A stretch of DNA of 64,000 bases from positions 556,632 to 620,631 of the forward strand of contig NW_005434654.1 of NCBI RefSeq assembly GCF_000315625.1. Reading direction: 5' to 3'. The translations under genes were made by a program, and so were the position numbers. The stretch is from Guillardia theta CCMP2712. Lineage: Eukaryota > Protista > Cryptophyta. Position 1 is the stretch's first letter; each line of letters opens with the position of its first letter. Shown piece by piece: positions 10,311 through 22,100 of the stretch. The notes below the pieces were generated by a model, which did no database searches, was not told where the DNA came from, and saw only the letters and a program-made list of their open reading frames with translations.

Positions 10311-12545
10311 CGAGATATTCTCAACATTATGGTGGATGGAGGGGTCAGTGATACCAGGCATCCTCTTCCTTGCGGCGATCAGTGGAATGAACGGCATCGT
10401 TGCAGTAAGAACTATCCTGTGGTCGATTCCGTCTGGAAGTTTAAATGTGAGAGCAGGTGTATTTCAAAGAAAACTACAACTATTACATAACTAGCACAAC
10501 ACATTCACTGATGGCGTCGACACTCGGGTTCTTCTTGATCTTGAAGAACTGTCTCGGTGAGGGCGCCTTTGCTGTCTGTAACCTCAAAGTTTGACATGTG
10601 CTTCTCCGAAGCCTTCTTCCACTTCCATAGCGCAAAGAGGTAGGAGCAATGATCACATCGCATCTTTACCGACTGGAACAACTCGCTGACCTCTAATTAC
10701 ACTTGTGCTTGCATAGAACGGTGCATGACTTGCTGGATGCGATGCGGACTCTTGCGATCCATGTGCAAGCCTATGGAGTGGCGAGAAGCGAAGATGAGGT
10801 TCTCTTATGAGCTGACTGTTGCTTGCTCTGAGTCTCGTCGAAGGCTCGGGATATTGTCAACACATATACAAATCTATCCAAACATCTCGTTGTCATGTGA
10901 GCAAAAGAGTCTGAGGAGACAATGACTGAACTAGCGTCAGGTTTTACAGCCTGACCTTGCATCTCCGGAAACAGAACGTTCTCCCTCCCAAGTCAAGATT
11001 ACCACTGTGAAGCGGTTGGCGAAGTCTGAGAAGCGTCTGACTCTGGTCAGGTACTTGTACCCATGGGAACTCTCGAAGTGGAATGAAGCGACGGTCCGAC
11101 CGCTCGCATGCCTTGTGATGATCAACAACGACATCTCCAAACTGCGCAACAAAGGGATTTACTCCGATCAAGTGATGAATCTGCCTGACGTTGGCTCGAC
11201 GTTGATCGCAAGATGCAGGTGGCGTGCATGATGTCCAAGGAGGTCAAGAGGATGACACAGATCTTCGGCGAGATGGAAAAGTTGAAAGACAGTCCGACCA
11301 TTCCCTTTGCATACTATCAGTTCTGCAAGTAATCTTGTAGGCGTCATTTCAGCTCGCCTGATTTCTATTTGCAGCTGGACAACTCTGGCATACTCCTTGA
11401 CCGTCCCAGCGGCGATTGGAACCTACGACACGTACTACACAGCCACGTCCTTGTTGTCTTTCTTCGTGGCAGCCCTCTTCATAGGGCTCAACTTCATCGG
11501 GTGATAGCTTGCTTGACATGTCCTCTCCCATTCACCCCAGCAATTCAGAAATCTCCTGCAAAATCCGTTCGGGCTCGGGCCCAACGACATCCCTCTGGAG
11601 CAGTGGGGGCAGTCACTTGAGAACGAGCTCTACCAGCACTTCCCCATCTTCAAGTTCAGGTTTCTTCCTCTCTTCGCATCACCTTCGCTGGGTTCACGCG
11701 TGCTCGACTTGGCTGCAGGTTCGGAGCTTTCCCTCTCTTTGTGGAAGATTTCACAGCGTACCCTCCGGAGGATCGACGTGCCCTCTACAAGGACGACTCG
11801 TCCATCACCATGTTTCACAAGCCGTCTGCCTGGATTGTGACGAGGAACAAGATACGAGCTGCTATGAGGTTGGGGAATAGGAAGCTGAAGAAGTTCCGAG
11901 AGGCCAAACCCACAAGAGAGGCGATAGTTGCAGAGATCATGCGAGATCGGAGGAAGCAAGCCTTTGATGACATGTCGCTGCTTGTGCAGCAGTTCGGTGA
12001 GATCCTCTCTTGTTCTGTTCTCACATTCAATCCCTTGAGAAGGTGCGGCGCCAAAGGACAGGGAGGGATCAAACAAAAACGCAACGCAGAAGTACTCGAA
12101 GGTTGCAGCAGAAGAATCAGCTTCACACCCAGCCGAAACTTCTGAGATGGACAACAAAGAGGAAAGAGAATCAGAAACGATGCAAGACAAAGCTGACGAA
12201 ATTCTCAACACGCAGCTAAGAAGTGGATGCTGACTTGTGAGATTACATCCCCATGACTTGCTTGTAGGTCGAGGCAGAAGATCTCGAGCTCCGGCCGAGC
12301 TAACACCCAAACCAGCAATAGTGAAACAAGCTTCACTGCTCATCAAGAGGTTCCCTGAGAGCGAAGAGATGTGAGTAGCTCTACTGCCTTGACCGCCACC
12401 TGTAACCCTTCTACCCCACAGGCAGCAGATGTACCAACAGATCATCAACCCCAACATCCCCGACGTAGACAAGACAGCGATGCTTGCCCTGATGAATGCA
12501 GAGGCAAACGCACTGTCCGATGAGATCGACTTAGACTTGCATTGA
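10291..12545 (+). CDS. Bestrophin / RFP-TM family anion channel (multi-exon)
   Basis: N-terminal MIVYDPSEIFSTLWWMEGSVIP, TM segments, SPTIPFAYYQ, and LQNPFGLGPNDIPLE (bestrophin NPFG..ND.PL motif). Confidence 0.8.
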
Positions 12546-12598
12546 ATTGAGACATGTAACAATATAGAGACAATGACAAGAAAGCGAAGAATCGCCCT

Positions 12599-15500
12599 TC
12601 ATGGTGTCAACCTCACGAATCGTGCTCCTAACAGACCCTCCCCTCCCCATCTCCTCGGCACAATCTTCAACGGAAGCTCTCGCAACTCCCTGCAAAGAGC
12701 TCACATCACGAGCGGGTAGACATCAAGAGGCCAAGGAGGGGGGGAGGTTAAGAAGAGCGAGAAACAGACCTCCCCGTGACTCTGTTGACGCGACTGATGA
12801 GGAGAGTTAGCTCCTGTCCCTCCATCCGCTCCACAGCATCTCCCACAAGGGATACCCCGAACCTCTTCACTGACGGCAAGGTATCAGAACTTCCACTCGC
12901 AGCACGCACAAGGAACCTGAGGAGGCGTCGGCGCTCCCTATGGCGATGATGCGATCACCCACCATCATGCCTCCTTCCTCAGCAGGAGACGAGGGCATGA
13001 CCTGAGCCAACGGCGTGACTGACCCAACGGCAGCAAGCGACGGCCTCACCTCTTCGACGACAGCAAAGGGCTGGATATCCTCGTCTTCTAGTCTCAACCT
13101 TTCCAGAATCTTATTGATGGTCTGGAGATTATTCTGCGCGGTGGCAATCGAGGATTGTCGAAGAGATCGATCGGCCTGCTCTTGCTTCTCCTCCTTGTCG
13201 TTTTCTGAAGCCGGGTGCAAGCAGACTTCATTCACGCTCTCCATGCTGAAATCAGAGATCGTCATCACCAGAATCTGCGTTCCTCTTCAAGGTATACCTG
13301 ACTGTGTCATCAAGAGGTAGATTGCTGTGATGAAACAAGTGTTCAGCACGACAACTGTGTAGATCATCTGTCAGAGGCTCACTTATATCCGTTGCGAATC
13401 ATGTCTTTTTGAAGTTGATCATTTTCCTGGGCAATTTGAGAATGTGTTCTCCCCTTTGGCGTGGGCCCTGGCGTGATCTCGGAGGCTACATGGAACTCAA
13501 GGAAATTCTGCGCGCACGATGAGAAGAGAGCTACGAATCACCGGGAGATCACCAATGAATCCATCTTATGGGGCTTCAAAGAGGAATTTGTCTCTGAATG
13601 AATCTTCTCTCTGTCTTCCTGAAATCACCGATCAGATTATCCTTCACAGCAGACAGTGAGGCAACTTTTGTGCTTTCGACATCGTCCTCCTGCGAATGCC
13701 CGCTGGATCGAGCGTGAACACCTAGTCTGTACAGGCGATGAGCCTGGCTCCTTAGCTCGCCAACAGATCGCTTGCACAAGTTGTCCACCAAGAGGTTGAC
13801 CGGCAGATTTGCTAGCGATCTGTCTGCCGGGGCAAACGAGTCTTCCACGCCGAGCTCGAGACGAGAGTCAGCAAGAGAGTCGGAGCGTCTCGCTCGAGTT
13901 TGTTCAACAAGAAGTGAATCCTCTGACTTCCCTCCTGCGTCCTCATCCATGGCCTCGGCAAGACTTTTCTCCTTCGCCTGCGTGCCCTCTTGAGGGACTT
14001 TAGCAGATTCAGCAAACGACTCGTGCGCTGCAACTTGGAGGATTTCTTGATGCGATTGCTGATCTTCCTCGAGCATCTCGCCTTCCTCCATGTCGGTGTG
14101 CACATCTTCATTTTCTTGCTTTTCCATGCCTTCTGTGTCTGTTGCATGTGCGCTAGCCTCCTCCTCAGCGATGGCTCGTACTTGTGCTTGTTCCTGTTCT
14201 TGTGCTTCAGCTTCAACCTCTCGCTCAACTCGTGCTGCTTCTTCTGGTCGTGCTTCGGCCTGAGCTGCTATCTGCGCTGCTTCAGCTTGTCCCTCCATGG
14301 TTACTTCTTCTCGTTCATCTGCTCCAGCCTCAGCACTTCCTGCCACACACTCTTGCGCTTGCGCTTGCGACTCCATAGCTACTGGTGCTGGTGCATCTCC
14401 TTCTGCTGCCTCCTCGAGTGGCTTGTCAGCTTCAATGGCTACTTGCACGGGCACTGCTTGCTCCTCCCTTGATGCTCGTCTTTCTTCTTCTGCCTTTTCT
14501 CTTTCTGCCTTCACCATCGATTGTGATCCGGATTCTTTCTCCTCACATCCAGACAATAAACTTTGCTCCTTGCTTCCTGTTGCCTCTTTACCTATCTCTG
14601 CAGCATCCCCTTTGCTTGCCTGTCTCTGTCTGTCATCACCACAAGTATCTGTCTCGCTCTTGGTAATCATAGGAGTCGGAGTTATGTGTCCATCAGCTCC
14701 AAGTCTTTCACTGTTTTCTTGCTGTGTGTCTTCAAGAGGTCTCAACCCACTTTCATGTAAGACGGCAGATTCTTGAATGTCATGTACAACTTCATCTACT
14801 CCACGATCGAGGACGGGGCTCGCAACCCCACAACTTTCGTCATGTAGTTCGAGATCGTTGTTCACAGTCGCCGAGGCATCATTGCATGCTTTTGGCTTCT
14901 CCTCTTGGTTTGTTGGTTTCCCCTTTTGCTCAACTTTTTCACCCTCAGCGACATGTTCCCTGTCTTTGTCGACTGGAGAATGTGAACCTCCGCTCGAACG
15001 TGTAGTGTCATTCACCATGGAGGCATTTCTGGCCTAAGGAGATAGAGTGAGTGCATGAAACTCAAAATGCGGAAAAGACCTTCTCTTCCATCAACTTCTC
15101 CCTTTCAACCGCAACTTCTCGGAAGAAGAAAGGCATCTCGAACTTGTCGAACACCCCAGTGCGCAAGCCCACCTGCACCATGGGTGTTACTTTATATCGT
15201 TGCAGATGTTCGAATGCGCTGGACCTCATTGATTCTTGTTTCCCGATCATCACCTTGATTGGCGTCAGCTACAGGATTCCACACAAGATGAATCTTACCT
15301 GGCTCCCAGAACATTTCTTCTTCTGCGTCTTCTCCCCCTCGACGAGCAACGAAGTACTTGTAACTGATGGACTGAGCTGCCGGTAGCTCGAGACACGTGC
15401 TCCAAACCTGAGAAGACAGCGTCATAAGAGTGATAGCCAGTGAGCTGTCCGACACCTCGGTATGTCCGATCTTTATCTTTTGCAAACGAGTGCTCTTGGC

Positions 15501-18060
15501 AGGGTCCCATCCTCCCAGCGCCTATCAATGAGAAGGTGACGTCACTCTACTCTTCATCGCAGAAACGCAACCCCATTTGCTCCTCACCTCATCCTCTCCA
15601 CTAAGGCAGACAACATCCTTTTCATGCAGGCCTCGAGCTTCAACATTGAAGCAGCACAAGCTCTGCAGAGGTGGTTCAGATTCTTGCAAGTGTTCTCATC
15701 ATCCTGCATTGGAACCTTCTGGGGAACTTCCGGATGGGAAGGAACCAGGAACGAAGAATCCTGTGAGCAAAATGACATAAGATACATTTCTGACTGCATT
15801 TGATGATCACCATGTCCTGTACAGGCTCATGGTGGACGTAGTGACAGTTGAGATGGTCTAGAATCTACCAGAAATCAGATTTGTTTGCAGCGCTCAGATG
15901 CAATCTACATGTCTATCTATCATCATGTTGTCCCGCCTGCCTTCAACCCAATTGACTTCTGAGATACATATCCGTCACTATTGCATATCACACAAGCAAA
16001 GCACAGGGCACCGGCAGACTGCGTCAAGATTTTCCTATTTTCTAAGATCCCCTCCCATCTCGGCTGTTTCAGGTGGACGTACTTGTAGCGCAACTAAAAA
16101 TAGAATGAAAACAACGAAAGAGGGAGGAGCATGATACAAAATCGTTGCCATCAAGACAAAAAGCTCCAGTCCACGTGTTCCGATCAGTCTTGGACACGTT
16201 GAGCTCGAGCGCCTTGGCAGTATCCCACCTGAAGCAGTGATCATGTGCTGGTCCTGAAGACTATGCGCTCTCACTTCCCCAAAATATCGGTGGAGCCAAC
16301 CACTCCAATCGGTGACTGCACGTCAGCGAAACTCTTAACCTGTTCATCTATAGATCACATGATGTGGAATTTTCACCTTGATACAATTTCACCTCGAACA
16401 TGATCTTTCGCTCCTTGGACGATTTCGCGTCCACTGGTTTATGGAGTTGGACAGTTGGAGGCTTTCTATTCCACGATAGTGTTGTGCTAATCATAGTCAT
16501 CAGGGACATTAGGATATGTCTACGAATTTACCGGTTGAAGACATCTTTCACTGCAGTAATGGAATTGCGCTGGATGCAACCTTTGCGATGAATCTGCTCA
16601 TCTTCTATTCTTGGTGAATGATGTATAAGATATTTGTACGCCATCTACACTTGCATGTGAGCGCACAAGGTCAATCAAGTCACTTTTCGTACTTCTTGCC
16701 CCACTGGCAAAGGGATAGTTGCTGCCCATCTGTTCATCTTGGTTCTGTGGAGGGGAACAGCCCTGTTTTCCTATTTAAGAAGAACTTCACCAACAAGCAT
16801 CGAAGGTCAAGTAAACTGCAACAATACCTGCCAATTCCCTAGCCAATCGTTGCTGCCAGTGATTGATACAGTGTCATCTTCGCATAATCCAAGGGCTCCA
16901 GCGTCCAATTCAAAAGTGCAGATGGCCGTCTATGTCATGTCATCATTCATAAGATTTGTCTTCAGGTAAGAAAAACCTGTGTCGAATTGTTGCCAAACTC
17001 GACTTCTTCACAAACCTGGACGCGAAATGTTCACAACACCATTATACCTTGACGTTCATACCATGTGGGAAGAGTTCCCAAACAAATCTTTCACCAACAG
17101 TTTGCCCCCGTCCTATAAAACGATCACAATGCGTTGCTAATCTTCTTAGGTACAGACCTCAGGAGTTTTGAAACACCTCTCTTCTGTCTCAAGCCTGTTG
17201 GAGACATCAGACCAAGTTCTGAGGGAAAGTAATATTTTTCAACACAGCAGTCCTTACTTGGGCTTCTTTTCGATCATGTAATAGTAGGTGAAATTCTGTT
17301 CTTCCAATTTTGATTCGAGGAACCAAAGTGACTCCTGTTCATTTTGGTTCTTCTTTTCCATTGCGAAGGTCTACGGAGAGCATGTGTCAGGAACACATTC
17401 TCACCCTCCAACCAATGTATAGAATGAGGAAAGATACTACAACGCGTAACTTACCTGTCTAGCATTCGACTTCCCTATCTTGGCGCTCGAGATCGCTATC
17501 TTGAGGTACTCATCATCTTGCAACCCGAAAGCGACAGTGTTGAACTGACAAAAGCCAGGAGACGGCAAAGTCTCGTTCTCTCCATCACCACAGAGAGATA
17601 CTGTTCTAGGGGCCATGTGATTGATAGTCTCTTTGATAACACAATCTGTTGCAATGTCTTCGATGCATCTTTCTTCCACGTCCTCTAGCTCGGGGGCCTT
17701 CTTAATCAAGTACTTATACTCTACGGTGAAGCCTTGCGGCAGTTCCAGTTCACAAAACCATACATTCGGAGCATCTTTCTTTCTCTTCAAGTACTTGGCA
17801 TTTTTGACATTCCAATCGCCAAGTTGGTCGACATTGCCGGTTAAAGCAAGCATCTCGTCAGGGGCTAGTCCCTCAGCTTCGATTTCGAGCCTCCATTTTC
17901 GCTTCTCCGTTTCTTTTGAGCTAGTCCTCAATTGAAGATTTTGGATGGGCTGGATGTTTCCGTTCTTCTTGACTTTCAATGCTGGCATGTCACTGGCTAT
18001 AGGCAGGTATCCATGGCAAAACAAGAATGCAACGGAGATCCAAATGAACCTGAACGTCAT
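12599..18060 (-). CDS. Signal peptide + five CBM20 starch-binding modules + acidic linker + PSMD9/Nas2-like PDZ domain (multi-exon, probably one gene)
   Basis: CBM20 motifs such as LALTGNVDQLGDW...EYKYL, ITGSNDWLGNW...AYKYL, GVVGSTDILGKWD...RYKYV..WEGILENR, CLSGEDE-ALGGWD...SYKYF..WEPG; ORF 15018-13576 is the Glu/Ala-rich linker; C-terminus FAVVEE-VMPSSPAEEGGMMVGDRII...VPRRWGGEGLLG. Confidence 0.75.
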
Positions 18061-19144
18061 GTTGCAAGTGTGAACTTCCACAACCTCTATGTTCTCTGGA
18101 GCACGCCTGCTCCGATTCAAACGACGGCAGCGACAAGAGGGATAGCCCGGGTGTATGAACGAGCTTCCACAAGTGTAAGAGGATACCTCACTGCCTCAAT
18201 TCGACCTCCGTAGCCCAGATAGCCGACATTAGGCCCTTTCACGGTACGAGAGGTCCTCTGAGCATGTCAGATGCTACCGCCCTTTCCTGGAGCAAGAAGG
18301 CGACAAAGGCATGCTTTCCTTCTTCTTTCATTGTCGATCTTCCTCGGCATCTTTCTTCTTCTACCACTCACTTTGTCTTCCGATCGATCTCGCAGAACAC
18401 AAACGCTGCGCCCCCCCCGCTTCACCCATATCACACACCCTACCCCTCTTTCGTCATCCTACCCCCACCCCATCGAAGCATTCGAAAGTACCCCTACCTT
18501 GTAACATCTTGTACCCCTACCCCTCGAGAATCGCATCCTTGCAACAAATATGAGGGTATCGAGTAAACCCCTACCCCCTATTCCACAGATAAAACCAGGG
18601 GTGACCTGGAGATAGGCCGTAACCACCCACCCCCGTGACCCCCGTGTCTCCCCAATAGGACGCTGAGAACTACAAATTTGTAACCGAGCGTATCGTAAAT
18701 TATCGTTTTGGTCGTACGTTGAATGGAAAATCATTCGAGAGCATATGAATTAGAATACTTATCGTATCTAATTTGACTGTAAATTATTTGGCAAAACAAG
18801 TCGCTACCATGTCGTACCCCCTACCCCCTACCCATTACTTCTACTCTTTACCACCCCCTTGCCACCCAGCATTGGTAACCAATCGTGTCCGCAAAGTTGT
18901 ATGAAGAGGCTCTGAGGCGCACCCGTAGGGAATAGTTGCTGCCACTTCAGTGATCGCCGGCGTTCCCGATGTCGGCCGGCCCGGCAGCGGCCCGGTCGAT
19001 AACTTGAGGGGTTGGCCCGCATTCAACGGCTGGAATGGCGAAGCAGCGCTGATGCAGCGAAGGATCAAGTAGTGCGACGTTGCTCGGGTGAGACAGGAAG
19101 AAGGGGAGAGGGGAGAGAGAAGAGAAGGACTTGCCTCCTTAGTG

Positions 19145-22100
19145 ATGCTAGACGAGCTGAGAGCCAGGGCTCTGATAGAGCAATCGCGCTCGGAGGGCTC
19201 TCCAGCGTTGTTGAACGAGGCCTACCAGATCGTTAAGGATCTCAGCACTCCGTCAGCACTCAAGAACCCAAAGTTCTCCTTGGAAGTCGTTTCTCCCGAG
19301 CTCCACGTAATTATTGCAGAAACCTCGCTCGATCTCTCATCGCCTTCTCGCACAGAGGACCAGCTTGTGAGCAACCGGATTCAGCTGCAGGAGCTTGCAT
19401 ACAACTGCCTCCAGTCCTTCTTGAGTTCTAAACCTTCGTCGGATCAGTTTCTAGCAAGGGCATACTTGGCTTACGCGACTCTCGCCTGTCGCTGGGCAGA
19501 TGGAAGGAAAGGTGACGGGCTTGTAGATGCTGTCCTCAAGGCACTGGATTTCGTGATGAGGGCTTTGAACCTGGCCCTTGAAAGTTTGCCGAGGTATCAA
19601 TTTCTGGTCTACAATGCATCGGTAGTGTACTGGAGATGTAGCAGACCGCTTCAGCGCAAGGGATACTTCCATCACATCCTCAACTCCATGCCGCAGGTGT
19701 GCGATGCTCTCATGAAGCTAGACGGGGACGATGTAGAGTGGAAGGCAAAGTACATCATCGCCCTTGCCCGCGCCTATGAGTTCTCAGACAGAAGCGATGA
19801 TGCTGGAAAGTACTTGCAGAATGCTGTTGGGATGATGTCGAGCTTGTCCGAAGAAACTCAGGTTGAGATCGTGCGGGTGTTGGTGCATGTGGACAGGACA
19901 AGGGGAGGAGGAGCCGGCGATAAGGTTGCGACTACCCCAAAACTTGGGCTCTATGCCAGGCTACAGAAAGTGAAGTCAGGAGTCATTTCCGATGAGAAAA
20001 TACCCGACGAACTCGAGGATCTGATCAAGAGCTCGTCCGAGGCTGGTGAGCTCAAAGTTCTTGCAGAAGCTGGAAGGCTCTGTCTTCTGAAGGGTCAGCC
20101 AACTTGTGCTCAGAATGCGATCGAAGCCATTGGTGGGGGAAACGATGCCGGCATGGCTGTTGCAGTCCTTACTGAATGCACGAAAGCTCAACTGTCTGTG
20201 ATGTCGCTTGGAGAGGAAGCAGAAATGTACACGCGCAAGATGGTAGACACCAGGCTTGATGCACTCTCCCGGTTGGAGAAAGCGTTGCCTTCAGCCGTAC
20301 GATCCAAAGATGCTGACGTCATCCACGAGATTTGCTCTCTAGCCTGGAGCCTGTGCTTGCCGATACTGCAGCCAAACCTGCGCAAGCAAGCGAAACGAGT
20401 GCTGCAGGCTTGCTGTAAGGCTCTGGAGGACATCGACTCTCCTCTTAATGAGCTTCGTGCCCAGCTGCACCTGGAAGTCGCCAGATGTGACGTAGCAGAC
20501 GATCTGTATGCGGCAGCAGCCGTCCAGGTAAAGAGGGAGGTAATCACTTTCATATCCCTAAAGGCTACTCTTGCAGGTACAGAAAGGCCTCGCCCTGGAT
20601 TACGTCGTGCCTGAAGACAGCATCATTGAGTACAAGAGGCCGTTTGACAAGCACCTGAACCTGATGAAGAAGAAGCTGTCCATGAAGATGTCGCTCTATT
20701 CGGCTCCCGACCGCCCGGAGGACAAGGCCATGCTCCTGGTAGAGCAGGCAAGAGAGTCCAAGGAAGCAGCTCTGAGGGCTTCGCTCCTGGACCGAGCCGT
20801 CGGGATCCTCTCGGCGGTATGAGGTGGGAAGCACGATCCTTGACTTGACTTGCCATGTCAGGTGGACGAAGCAACAGATGTCGCTGCATCAGCCTGTCCT
20901 GTGCCAGAGCTCAACGAACCTCAGGACCCGATCTACTCGGCTCGCGGGATCCAAAAGGAGCGGACGATGCTGTGGGGCGACATCGCATTGATCGCGTGGC
21001 AGAGCCACCTGATCAAGCAGACACTCGAGGCAGCAGAGTTTGCATGCGAGTACGAGGGGGACGTGGTCAAGGACAAGGACCTCATCATCCAGCAGGCTCA
21101 GGTTCAGTTTGCGCGGGCGGAGGCGCTCTTCATGCAGTTGCGAAGTGAAGGATGCGAACCTGGGAAGCCTCTGCCGCAGGAGGAAGCAAACCAGAAGAAT
21201 GTCTCTGCTAAAGTCGCGTGGGTTGAAGGGCTGAGAGAGAGGATTGTACAAGGTCTGTGAGAATTGCTTCCCTCCATCCTCCCTCTCCTCCATCCTCCCT
21301 GTCCGACCAAACCCGCCTGCTCCTTGTCTGACGCTCCAACAAGGTTTCTTGAAGGGCATGCGGCTGGGTTTGAAGGTGAAGGAGGACTGGATCGTATTCA
21401 ACGCTGCCGTCTACCTCTGGAACTATCACCTTCCCCTCTTCTCCAGCGCCAAGCTAGAGTCTATCTATGAAGCGCTTGAGGAGGTTGTCGGCACTCTACA
21501 CGTCGCCGGCTGCAAGGACAGTCAGCTGCTCTGCTCGGTCTCTTACGGTCTCGCGGTGGCACTTGAGGCGAGGGAGGCGAAGGTCTGAGAGAAGATCGTG
21601 AGCTGCTGCTGACGGAGATTGCAGGGAGAGGACGTGCTGTATCCCCCTGAAAGCCTGGGCGAGGAGGCTCCCAGCCTTGGGAACGGGACCTGCCTCGGGC
21701 ACGCAGTCGCTGTCTGCGAGGCTGCGGTAGAGATCTCCTCCCCGATGACGGCCAGACGTGTGCTGGGCGTCCTCGCGAGGCTGCGCCTTGCCCTCAACAA
21801 GTCGTCGAGTGCTGTCGACGTCAGCGGCGCTCCAGAAGCCTCCCTGATTATGCTGCTCGAGCTCATGAAAGTGGACGCTGATTCCAAGCCTGCTCTCGTC
21901 GAGAAGGTCCGCCTACTCCTTCCCCTCCTCTTCCTCCTTCCCCTCCCTCTCCTCACCCCTCATCATACTTCGTGCTCTGGTCCCAGCTCCTTCCTCCATC
22001 TGTAAGCTTCTGATGCGCTGCATCTCCTCCAGCCTTACATGCTTCTCCTTCCATCCTCCCCCTGTGCTCTCATGACTTCGTGAGTCTGACGCTCCAATAG

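Follow-up and report, generated by a model that had tools for sequence, protein, structure and literature searches.

A candidate starch-granule adaptor of Guillardia theta combines five CBM20 modules with a C-terminal Nas2/PSMD9-type PDZ domain

On the minus strand of a 64,000-nucleotide (nt) stretch of the genome of the cryptophyte Guillardia theta CCMP2712 (assembly GCF_000315625.1, contig NW_005434654.1, positions 556,632 to 620,631; hereafter the window), positions 12599-18060 appear in an open-frame listing as many short open stretches. A preliminary description, made from the sequence alone, joined them into one gene for a signal-peptide protein carrying five starch-binding CBM20 modules and a PDZ domain like that of PSMD9/Nas2, and read the product as a scaffold on starch granules. 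This raises two questions, i.e., whether the stretches really belong to one gene and what a protein of such composition might do. We found that they form one expressed gene with this domain content, and sequence comparisons indicate that the architecture is conserved, as Rhodomonas salina and an uncultured marine eukaryote share it. The earlier interpretation as a whole is partly supported.

Sequencing runs provided the first line of evidence for a single gene. The share of words sampled from the stretch that was found in each run was 0.60 for eight runs guessed as RNA and 0.75-0.90 for four unclassified runs from one 2011 study, the pattern expected for spliced RNA versus genomic DNA. The RNA label is a guess made by the tool, and run X1 carries the exon share of words alone. 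Four runs, referred to here by code, were aligned to 12320-18300. A single 5807-nt contig of run X1 covers the locus from 18300 to 12422 on the minus strand with 28 joints. At all 15 joints that were listed, 44-66 nt are skipped between CT and AC on the plus strand, i.e., GT..AG on the gene strand; the remaining 12 introns were placed by enumerating GT-AG pairs, with the exonic length taken from the contig coordinates and an open frame required. The model rebuilt from contigs of runs X1, X5, and X8 spans 12599-18060 (minus strand) in 28 exons separated by 27 GT-AG introns of 44-84 nt. It gives a coding sequence of 4050 nt that runs from the ATG at 18060 to the TGA at 12599-12601 and encodes 1349 amino acids (aa) followed by the stop, with no internal stop codon, and it matches all 13 contig coordinates that were checked. 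With one X1 contig spanning the locus and the frame open throughout, the fragmented open reading frames (ORFs) indeed form one gene with the start and stop originally proposed.

Several introns called for a choice between alternatives. Four intron sets keep the frame open in the region 16930-17257; we adopted the set of 63, 45, 46, and 47 nt, which lies within the size range and scores 55 and 53 against orthologs, and rejected the other three, which score at most 30. The last intron was placed at 12690-12769 by a contig piece boundary at 12688, with which the rejected alternative at 12686-12765 conflicts. One intron lies at either 12870-12916 or 12863-12909, which are equal in length, and alignment with the Rhodomonas protein favors the former.

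The spliced protein contains five CBM20 modules. In Pfam scans of pieces of the window, CBM_20 matched exon 1 within 17440-18060 (1.2e-13; 51.1 bits, the curated cut-off being 23.3) and in the exon of the fifth module at 15195-15521 (4e-6, 26.9 bits). We also built a local CBM20 profile from domains found in other proteins; its seed was a Pfam-verified module of the uncultured-eukaryote protein P0003, and both the window gene and its Hanusia ortholog were left out. This profile recovered four clear modules at 43-65 bits and a degenerate second one: module 1 at 17683-17883 (aa 60-126; 65.4 bits), module 2 at 17176-17523 (aa 180-246, spanning two introns; 12.7 bits), module 3 at 16591-16887 (aa 297-360, three exons; 59.7 bits), module 4 at 15957-16413 (aa 405-491 with its core at 421-477, four exons; 43.1 bits), and module 5 at 15243-15644 (aa 547-627, four exons; 51.4 bits). 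Profile support therefore extends across the whole proposed array rather than to one or two modules, weakly so for module 2, the degeneracy of which had also been anticipated; the exon joins of this module are backed by homology to the orthologs. Neither the window pieces nor the orthologs matched any catalytic family in the Pfam scans, in line with the catalytic domain that was previously noted as lacking.

Module 1 aligns to CBM20 domains of solved structure, namely those of GPCPD1 (1.8e-5) and Aspergillus glucoamylase (6e-4) in the PDB, so that the first Trp and the Lys of binding site 1 and the Trp of site 2 can be mapped. We compared the site-1 columns, which hold the LGxW Trp, the YKY Lys, and the WE Trp; in the glucoamylase of Aspergillus niger these are W543, K578, and W590, the last of them placed by its WE motif. 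Column alignment showed that modules 4 and 5 keep Trp, Lys, and Trp, as do all five modules of the Rhodomonas protein. After module 4, at 15909-15958, there is a motif W-x-E-x-RRDNM-x-(I/L)-x-R that is kept in the Hanusia and uncultured orthologs (ELRRDNMRLVRR); its counterpart in P0009 reads RHDNTRLAKR.

The C-terminal domain (12602-13073, minus strand; aa 1251-1349, four exons) is a PDZ of the Nas2/PSMD9-GRASP class that ends in WGGEGLLGARFVRLTP, and the terminus ...IVPRRWGGEGLLGARFVRLTP is as given in the preliminary description. Pfam PDZ_6 matched within 12870-13286 (1e-5). The class assignment drew on searches with orthologs. With the Rhodomonas C-terminus alone as the query, the best PDB match was yeast Nas2 (4o06, 36ax_R; 7e-4), and a profile of two orthologous sequences aligned to the Nas2 PDZ 4o06 across the whole domain (2.8e-6); DegQ and DegP score higher in this profile search, with scores that sum over two PDZs and cover the first half of the domain alone. 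When the Rhodomonas PDZ was modeled with AlphaFold (mean predicted local distance difference test score 76), the top Foldseek match was likewise the Nas2 PDZ 4o06 (E 2e-6, template modelling [TM] scores 0.73/0.77, 29% identity), followed by GRASP65/55 (TM approximately 0.70-0.72, approximately 22% identity) and then the PDZs of RseP. The final 29 aa of the window protein match GRASP65 PDZ1 (9e-4) and not Nas2, owing to a WGG.GLLGA motif, whereas GRASP was not among the best 60 matches of the ortholog profile against the PDB; the closing W-x-G-x-G-L-L-G motif is common to the window PDZ and Nas2. By sequence and predicted fold, the domain is thus a member of the Nas2/GRASP class of permuted PDZs with Nas2 as its nearest solved relative, as first suspected.

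The same architecture occurs in orthologs from other organisms. A HMMER search with exon 1, run exhaustively, returned as its best match P0001 from Hanusia phi, a 555-aa model that is 64% identical overall. This public EukProt model is mis-spliced, retaining introns and stopping at 555 aa, and database searches consequently under-report the family. The Rhodomonas salina protein P0079 (866 aa) begins with a signal peptide and a Ser/Arg-rich region, followed by five CBM_20 domains and a PDZ (Pfam); its source is probably a transcript, since the 2.9-kb contig barely exceeds the single ORF. P0003 and P0091, from marine metagenome contigs of an uncultured eukaryote in ENA (59% GC, compact eukaryotic gene order), contain six CBM_20 domains and a PDZ ending in RWAGDGLLG, and contig L001 places a signal-peptide exon (MGITLCLLLVSLLSPTACG) directly upstream, in the same frame and after a short intron. 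When modules were compared one by one across species, scores peaked on the diagonal (e.g., 189 for module 3 of Guillardia versus module 3 of Rhodomonas); the modules match their positional counterparts, which suggests that the array is old and has kept its order.

P0091 is a 1394-aa variant in which the last CBM20 module and the helical block after it are repeated, the copies being approximately 70% identical; the repeat is either a genuine tandem duplication present in some strains or a variant introduced by assembly. P0005 and P0008 (loci L002-L004) were rejected as orthologs, as no PDZ lies within their contigs. These eukaryotic metagenome genes have four to five CBM20 modules over consecutive same-strand ORFs, which are probably exons, and their sequences look like a second multi-CBM20 family. 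Word-based protein searches that used the orthologs' C-terminal parts as queries came back blank or with their own cluster alone, a limit of the method rather than evidence of absence, and atlas searches gave generic CBM20 or D-lactate dehydrogenase clusters alone.

Between the CBM20 array and the PDZ lies an acidic, low-complexity linker rich in Glu, Ala, and Ser (13666-15033, minus strand; aa 665-1120), encoded by one 1368-nt exon with an open frame. Its 456 aa, of which 16% are Glu and 14% Ala, carry a net charge of -59, and the linker is probably disordered; the preliminary description had estimated a Glu/Ala-rich linker of approximately 450 aa. The joints on either side of it are present in contigs of runs labeled RNA, and the X1 contig reaches past the PDZ exons. 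One X5 contig departs from the locus within the linker exon, at 14368, and its next 255 letters are unrelated, while X8 contigs also break in the linker, one of them at adapter sequence (13825). These breaks are probably assembly chimeras in the repetitive Glu/Ala-coding sequence.

It might nevertheless be argued that a CBM20 gene and a small neighboring PDZ gene were joined by read-through or contig assembly alone. The contigs cannot prove a single transcript, those of X5 and X8 break inside this low-complexity linker, and an internal start is possible. We nonetheless regard an artifact as highly improbable. The frame remains open across the linker exon and seven further spliced exons to the PDZ, such that neither a stop nor a new start intervenes; one X1 contig covers the whole locus; and the fusion recurs in single ORFs of two distant orthologs, with the window PDZ matching that of Rhodomonas at 43 bits and that of the uncultured eukaryote at 33 bits, which speaks against such an origin. 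Raw reads of the 3'-tag-like run X20 on the minus strand also pile up at 12520-13119 alone, consistent with a single 3' end.

The segment that follows the linker (13074-13618, minus strand; aa 1121-1250, five exons) matched no family. It had been called a short helical segment and resembles the Nas2 N-terminal domain by eye, a candidate identity that we ruled out: at a limit of E <= 10, Pfam matched Nas2_N to neither the window pieces nor the orthologs, phmmer against the PDB was also blank, and local alignment to the uncultured ortholog gave z = 0.2 against a shuffled control. That part of the description did not hold, as the segment neither contains a detectable Nas2 N-domain nor is conserved between orthologs. 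The protein carries a PSMD9-type PDZ but is not a member of the PSMD9 family.

At the N-terminus, a signal peptide (17992-18060, minus strand; aa 1-23) with the hydrophobic core FIWISVAFLFC (hydropathy maximum 2.55 at aa 5-15) is in agreement with the preliminary description. It precedes a basic stretch rich in Lys, Ser, and Thr (17887-17991; aa 24-58), a candidate for the transit-peptide-like half of a bipartite signal; net charge over aa 1-58 is +7. The residue left at +1 would be Tyr if cleavage follows Gly17 (CHG|Y) and Asp if it follows Ser23. In Hanusia, Glu replaces that Gly (CHE|Y), which is disfavored by the -3/-1 rule, and an (I/T)-A-S|D site six residues downstream is common to both species; the Hanusia Glu at -1 renders CHG|Y less plausible and, judging by these sequences, cleavage after Ser23 more likely than after Gly17. 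In Rhodomonas, the signal peptide is followed by Ser or Val, at the start of a long transit-like region rich in Ser and Arg. The warning originally attached to this protein, that Tyr at +1 would predict stromal rather than periplastidial targeting, is weakened by the Hanusia and Rhodomonas sequences, though Tyr would still result from a cut after Gly17.

Nas2/GRASP-type PDZs are cytosolic domains of eukaryotes, and one placed behind a signal peptide makes most sense in the remnant cytosol, i.e., the periplastidial compartment. Proteins of this compartment have a signal peptide and a transit-like part with a first residue that is neither aromatic nor Leu (PMC3101018), a rule with which the Rhodomonas sequence complies and the Guillardia sequence would if cut after Ser23. 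Starch of Guillardia is also located there and not in the stroma (PMC6559170). Periplastidial assignment is therefore plausible. We also considered that the protein acts in the stroma or pyrenoid, as Tyr at +1 would suggest, in the secretory pathway, or outside the cell, where it could bind another alpha-glucan or have a lectin-like role. The -3/-1 rule does permit CHG|Y with its aromatic +1 residue, and Leu may occupy +1 in the uncultured ortholog. A different compartment is nonetheless quite unlikely in our estimation: cryptophyte starch is not stromal, the (I/T)-A-S|D site is good in both Guillardia and Hanusia, the transit-like region of Rhodomonas starts with Ser or Val, and a cytosolic-type PDZ would be unexpected in the lumen of the endoplasmic reticulum (ER) or outside the cell.

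Taking these features together, the protein is probably a nucleus-encoded, non-catalytic adaptor of periplastidial starch granules in which a long acidic tether carries a PDZ that grips a partner's C-terminal tail. In this model, the signal peptide and basic stretch would carry the protein through the outer plastid membranes, which are continuous with the ER, and into the periplastidial compartment. The tandem CBM20 array, with four intact modules of which modules 4 and 5 have a complete canonical binding site 1, would hold the granule surface with high avidity, and the 456-aa linker may let the C-terminal PDZ extend off the granule. There, the Nas2/PSMD9-type PDZ would capture the C-terminal tail of at least one partner protein, the likeliest being an enzyme of starch metabolism or a protein that resides in the envelope or positions granules. 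That Rhodomonas salina and the uncultured eukaryote conserve the architecture in full adds support to the scaffold reading, which is reasonable.

Several observations weigh against this adaptor model. In Guillardia, the second Trp of site 1 is missing from modules 1 and 3, which retain its first Trp and its Lys, and the degenerate module 2 shows Ser in place of the LGxW Trp and YYY instead of YKY. Neither the linker nor the segment before the PDZ is conserved, whether in sequence or in length, and it is assumed that they act as no more than a tether. CHG|Y is the most canonical cleavage site in the Guillardia protein, and the resulting Tyr at +1 is a stromal signature. Finally, the evidence for the PDZ class comes partly from orthologs, which served as queries in the structure and PDB comparisons.

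The identity of the PDZ allows for a partner of another kind. If the domain keeps the ancestral ability of Nas2/PSMD9 to bind the Rpt5 tail, the protein would tether or chaperone periplastidial 26S proteasomes, or precursors of their base, at granules and so couple protein turnover to the carbohydrate store. Laforin-malin, in which a CBM20 protein brings the ubiquitin system to polyglucan, offers a precedent. Nas2 is the nearest solved relative of the PDZ by both sequence and fold, and the periplastidial compartment of Guillardia theta reportedly houses a 26S proteasome (PMC6559170, with reference to Stork 2012 and Maier 2015). Against this, the GRASP PDZs are nearly as close in fold, the last 29 aa resemble GRASP65 rather than Nas2, and the ligand specificity of PDZs shifts easily. 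In the 2014 work of Satoh et al., the N-terminal helical domain of yeast Nas2 is said to be the main contact with Rpt5; no such domain was detected here, and Rhodomonas has no room for one, as a Pro/Ser-rich linker alone precedes its PDZ. On balance, we consider the proteasome link unlikely. It is rather unlikely, too, that the PDZ still binds the tail of nucleomorph-encoded Rpt5 or of another AAA ATPase (e.g., symbiont Cdc48), such that granules dock the periplastidial proteasome or import-linked ubiquitin machinery. Such docking, if true, would tie the status of the carbon store to protein turnover within a reduced eukaryotic compartment and represent a cryptophyte counterpart of the laforin-malin logic.

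Several known systems share features with the protein. Nas2/PSMD9 (p27), an assembly chaperone of the proteasome base, shares the PDZ class and is the best full-domain PDB and fold match. However, it is a stand-alone cytosolic protein of approximately 200-230 aa with an N-terminal helical domain, whereas the 1349-aa window protein adds a signal peptide and five CBM20 modules and has no detectable N-domain; Rpt5-tail binding is at most putative. GRASP55/65, the second-best fold match, share the WGG.GLLGA motif with the window protein, but are myristoylated Golgi proteins that begin with a tandem pair of PDZs.

Like Sex Four 1 (LSF1) of plant chloroplasts is similar in being a non-catalytic granule protein with a PDZ-type domain together with a carbohydrate-binding module, and it serves as the platform of the starch-degrading complex BAM1-LSF1-MDH (PMC12892837). 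It differs in having one CBM48 and an inactive dual-specificity phosphatase domain, while the window protein has five CBM20 modules, a C-terminal Nas2-type PDZ, and no phosphatase-like domain. Pfam scans returned no dual-specificity phosphatase family, and the weak CBM_48 matches in the orthologs lie under CBM_20 matches. Compartment and lineage also differ, so any likeness to LSF1 would be convergent. Non-catalytic tethers with CBM20 or CBM48 further include PTST1-3 in plants, SAGA1/SAGA2 and LCI9 of the Chlamydomonas pyrenoid starch sheath, and STBD1/genethonin-1 in animals. These proteins resemble the window protein in combining a glucan-binding module, a long flexible or coiled region, and a protein-interaction element that recruits a partner or membrane. 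To our knowledge, none of them has a PDZ or an array of five CBM20 modules, and none is known from the periplastidial compartment.

A census in CAZy counted 17 CBM20 models in G. theta, eight of them with predicted secretion signals, and left the models themselves undiscussed (PMC6260743). Searches of the literature for CBM20 with PDZ, Guillardia with CBM20, and starch-binding domain with PDZ or periplastid retrieved no description of this architecture, in agreement with the preliminary description. The protein is thus most likely an undescribed adaptor that belongs in kind to the known non-catalytic scaffolds of polyglucan.

The genes on either side were also inspected. Downstream, a convergent plus-strand transcript has a poly(A) end near 12583 and overlaps the 3' end of the CBM20-PDZ gene with its own (12320-12600). 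Loose read ends at 12371 and 12422 suggest that it has a 50-nt intron at 12372-12421, and in the tag-like run it is far commoner than the CBM20-PDZ gene (depth 62 versus 5); its ORF pieces gave no match in a Pfam scan. The divergent upstream neighbor (19088-20614, plus strand) contains a 508-aa open stretch that matches the N-terminal tetratricopeptide repeats of CFAP46 (3.8e-22). CFAP46 is a ciliary central-apparatus protein, and this neighbor is unrelated to the CBM20-PDZ gene.

In plants, non-catalytic scaffold proteins are central to the initiation, shaping, and degradation of starch granules. The periplastidial starch of cryptophytes derives from the cytosolic starch of red algae, and we know of no comparable scaffold that has been described for it. 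The CBM20-PDZ gene provides a concrete, conserved, and expressed candidate for this role. Should its partner be a starch enzyme, the protein would represent a convergent invention of the PDZ-plus-CBM scaffold of plant LSF1; should it be a proteasomal ATPase, starch and protein turnover would be linked, unexpectedly, in the remnant cytoplasm.

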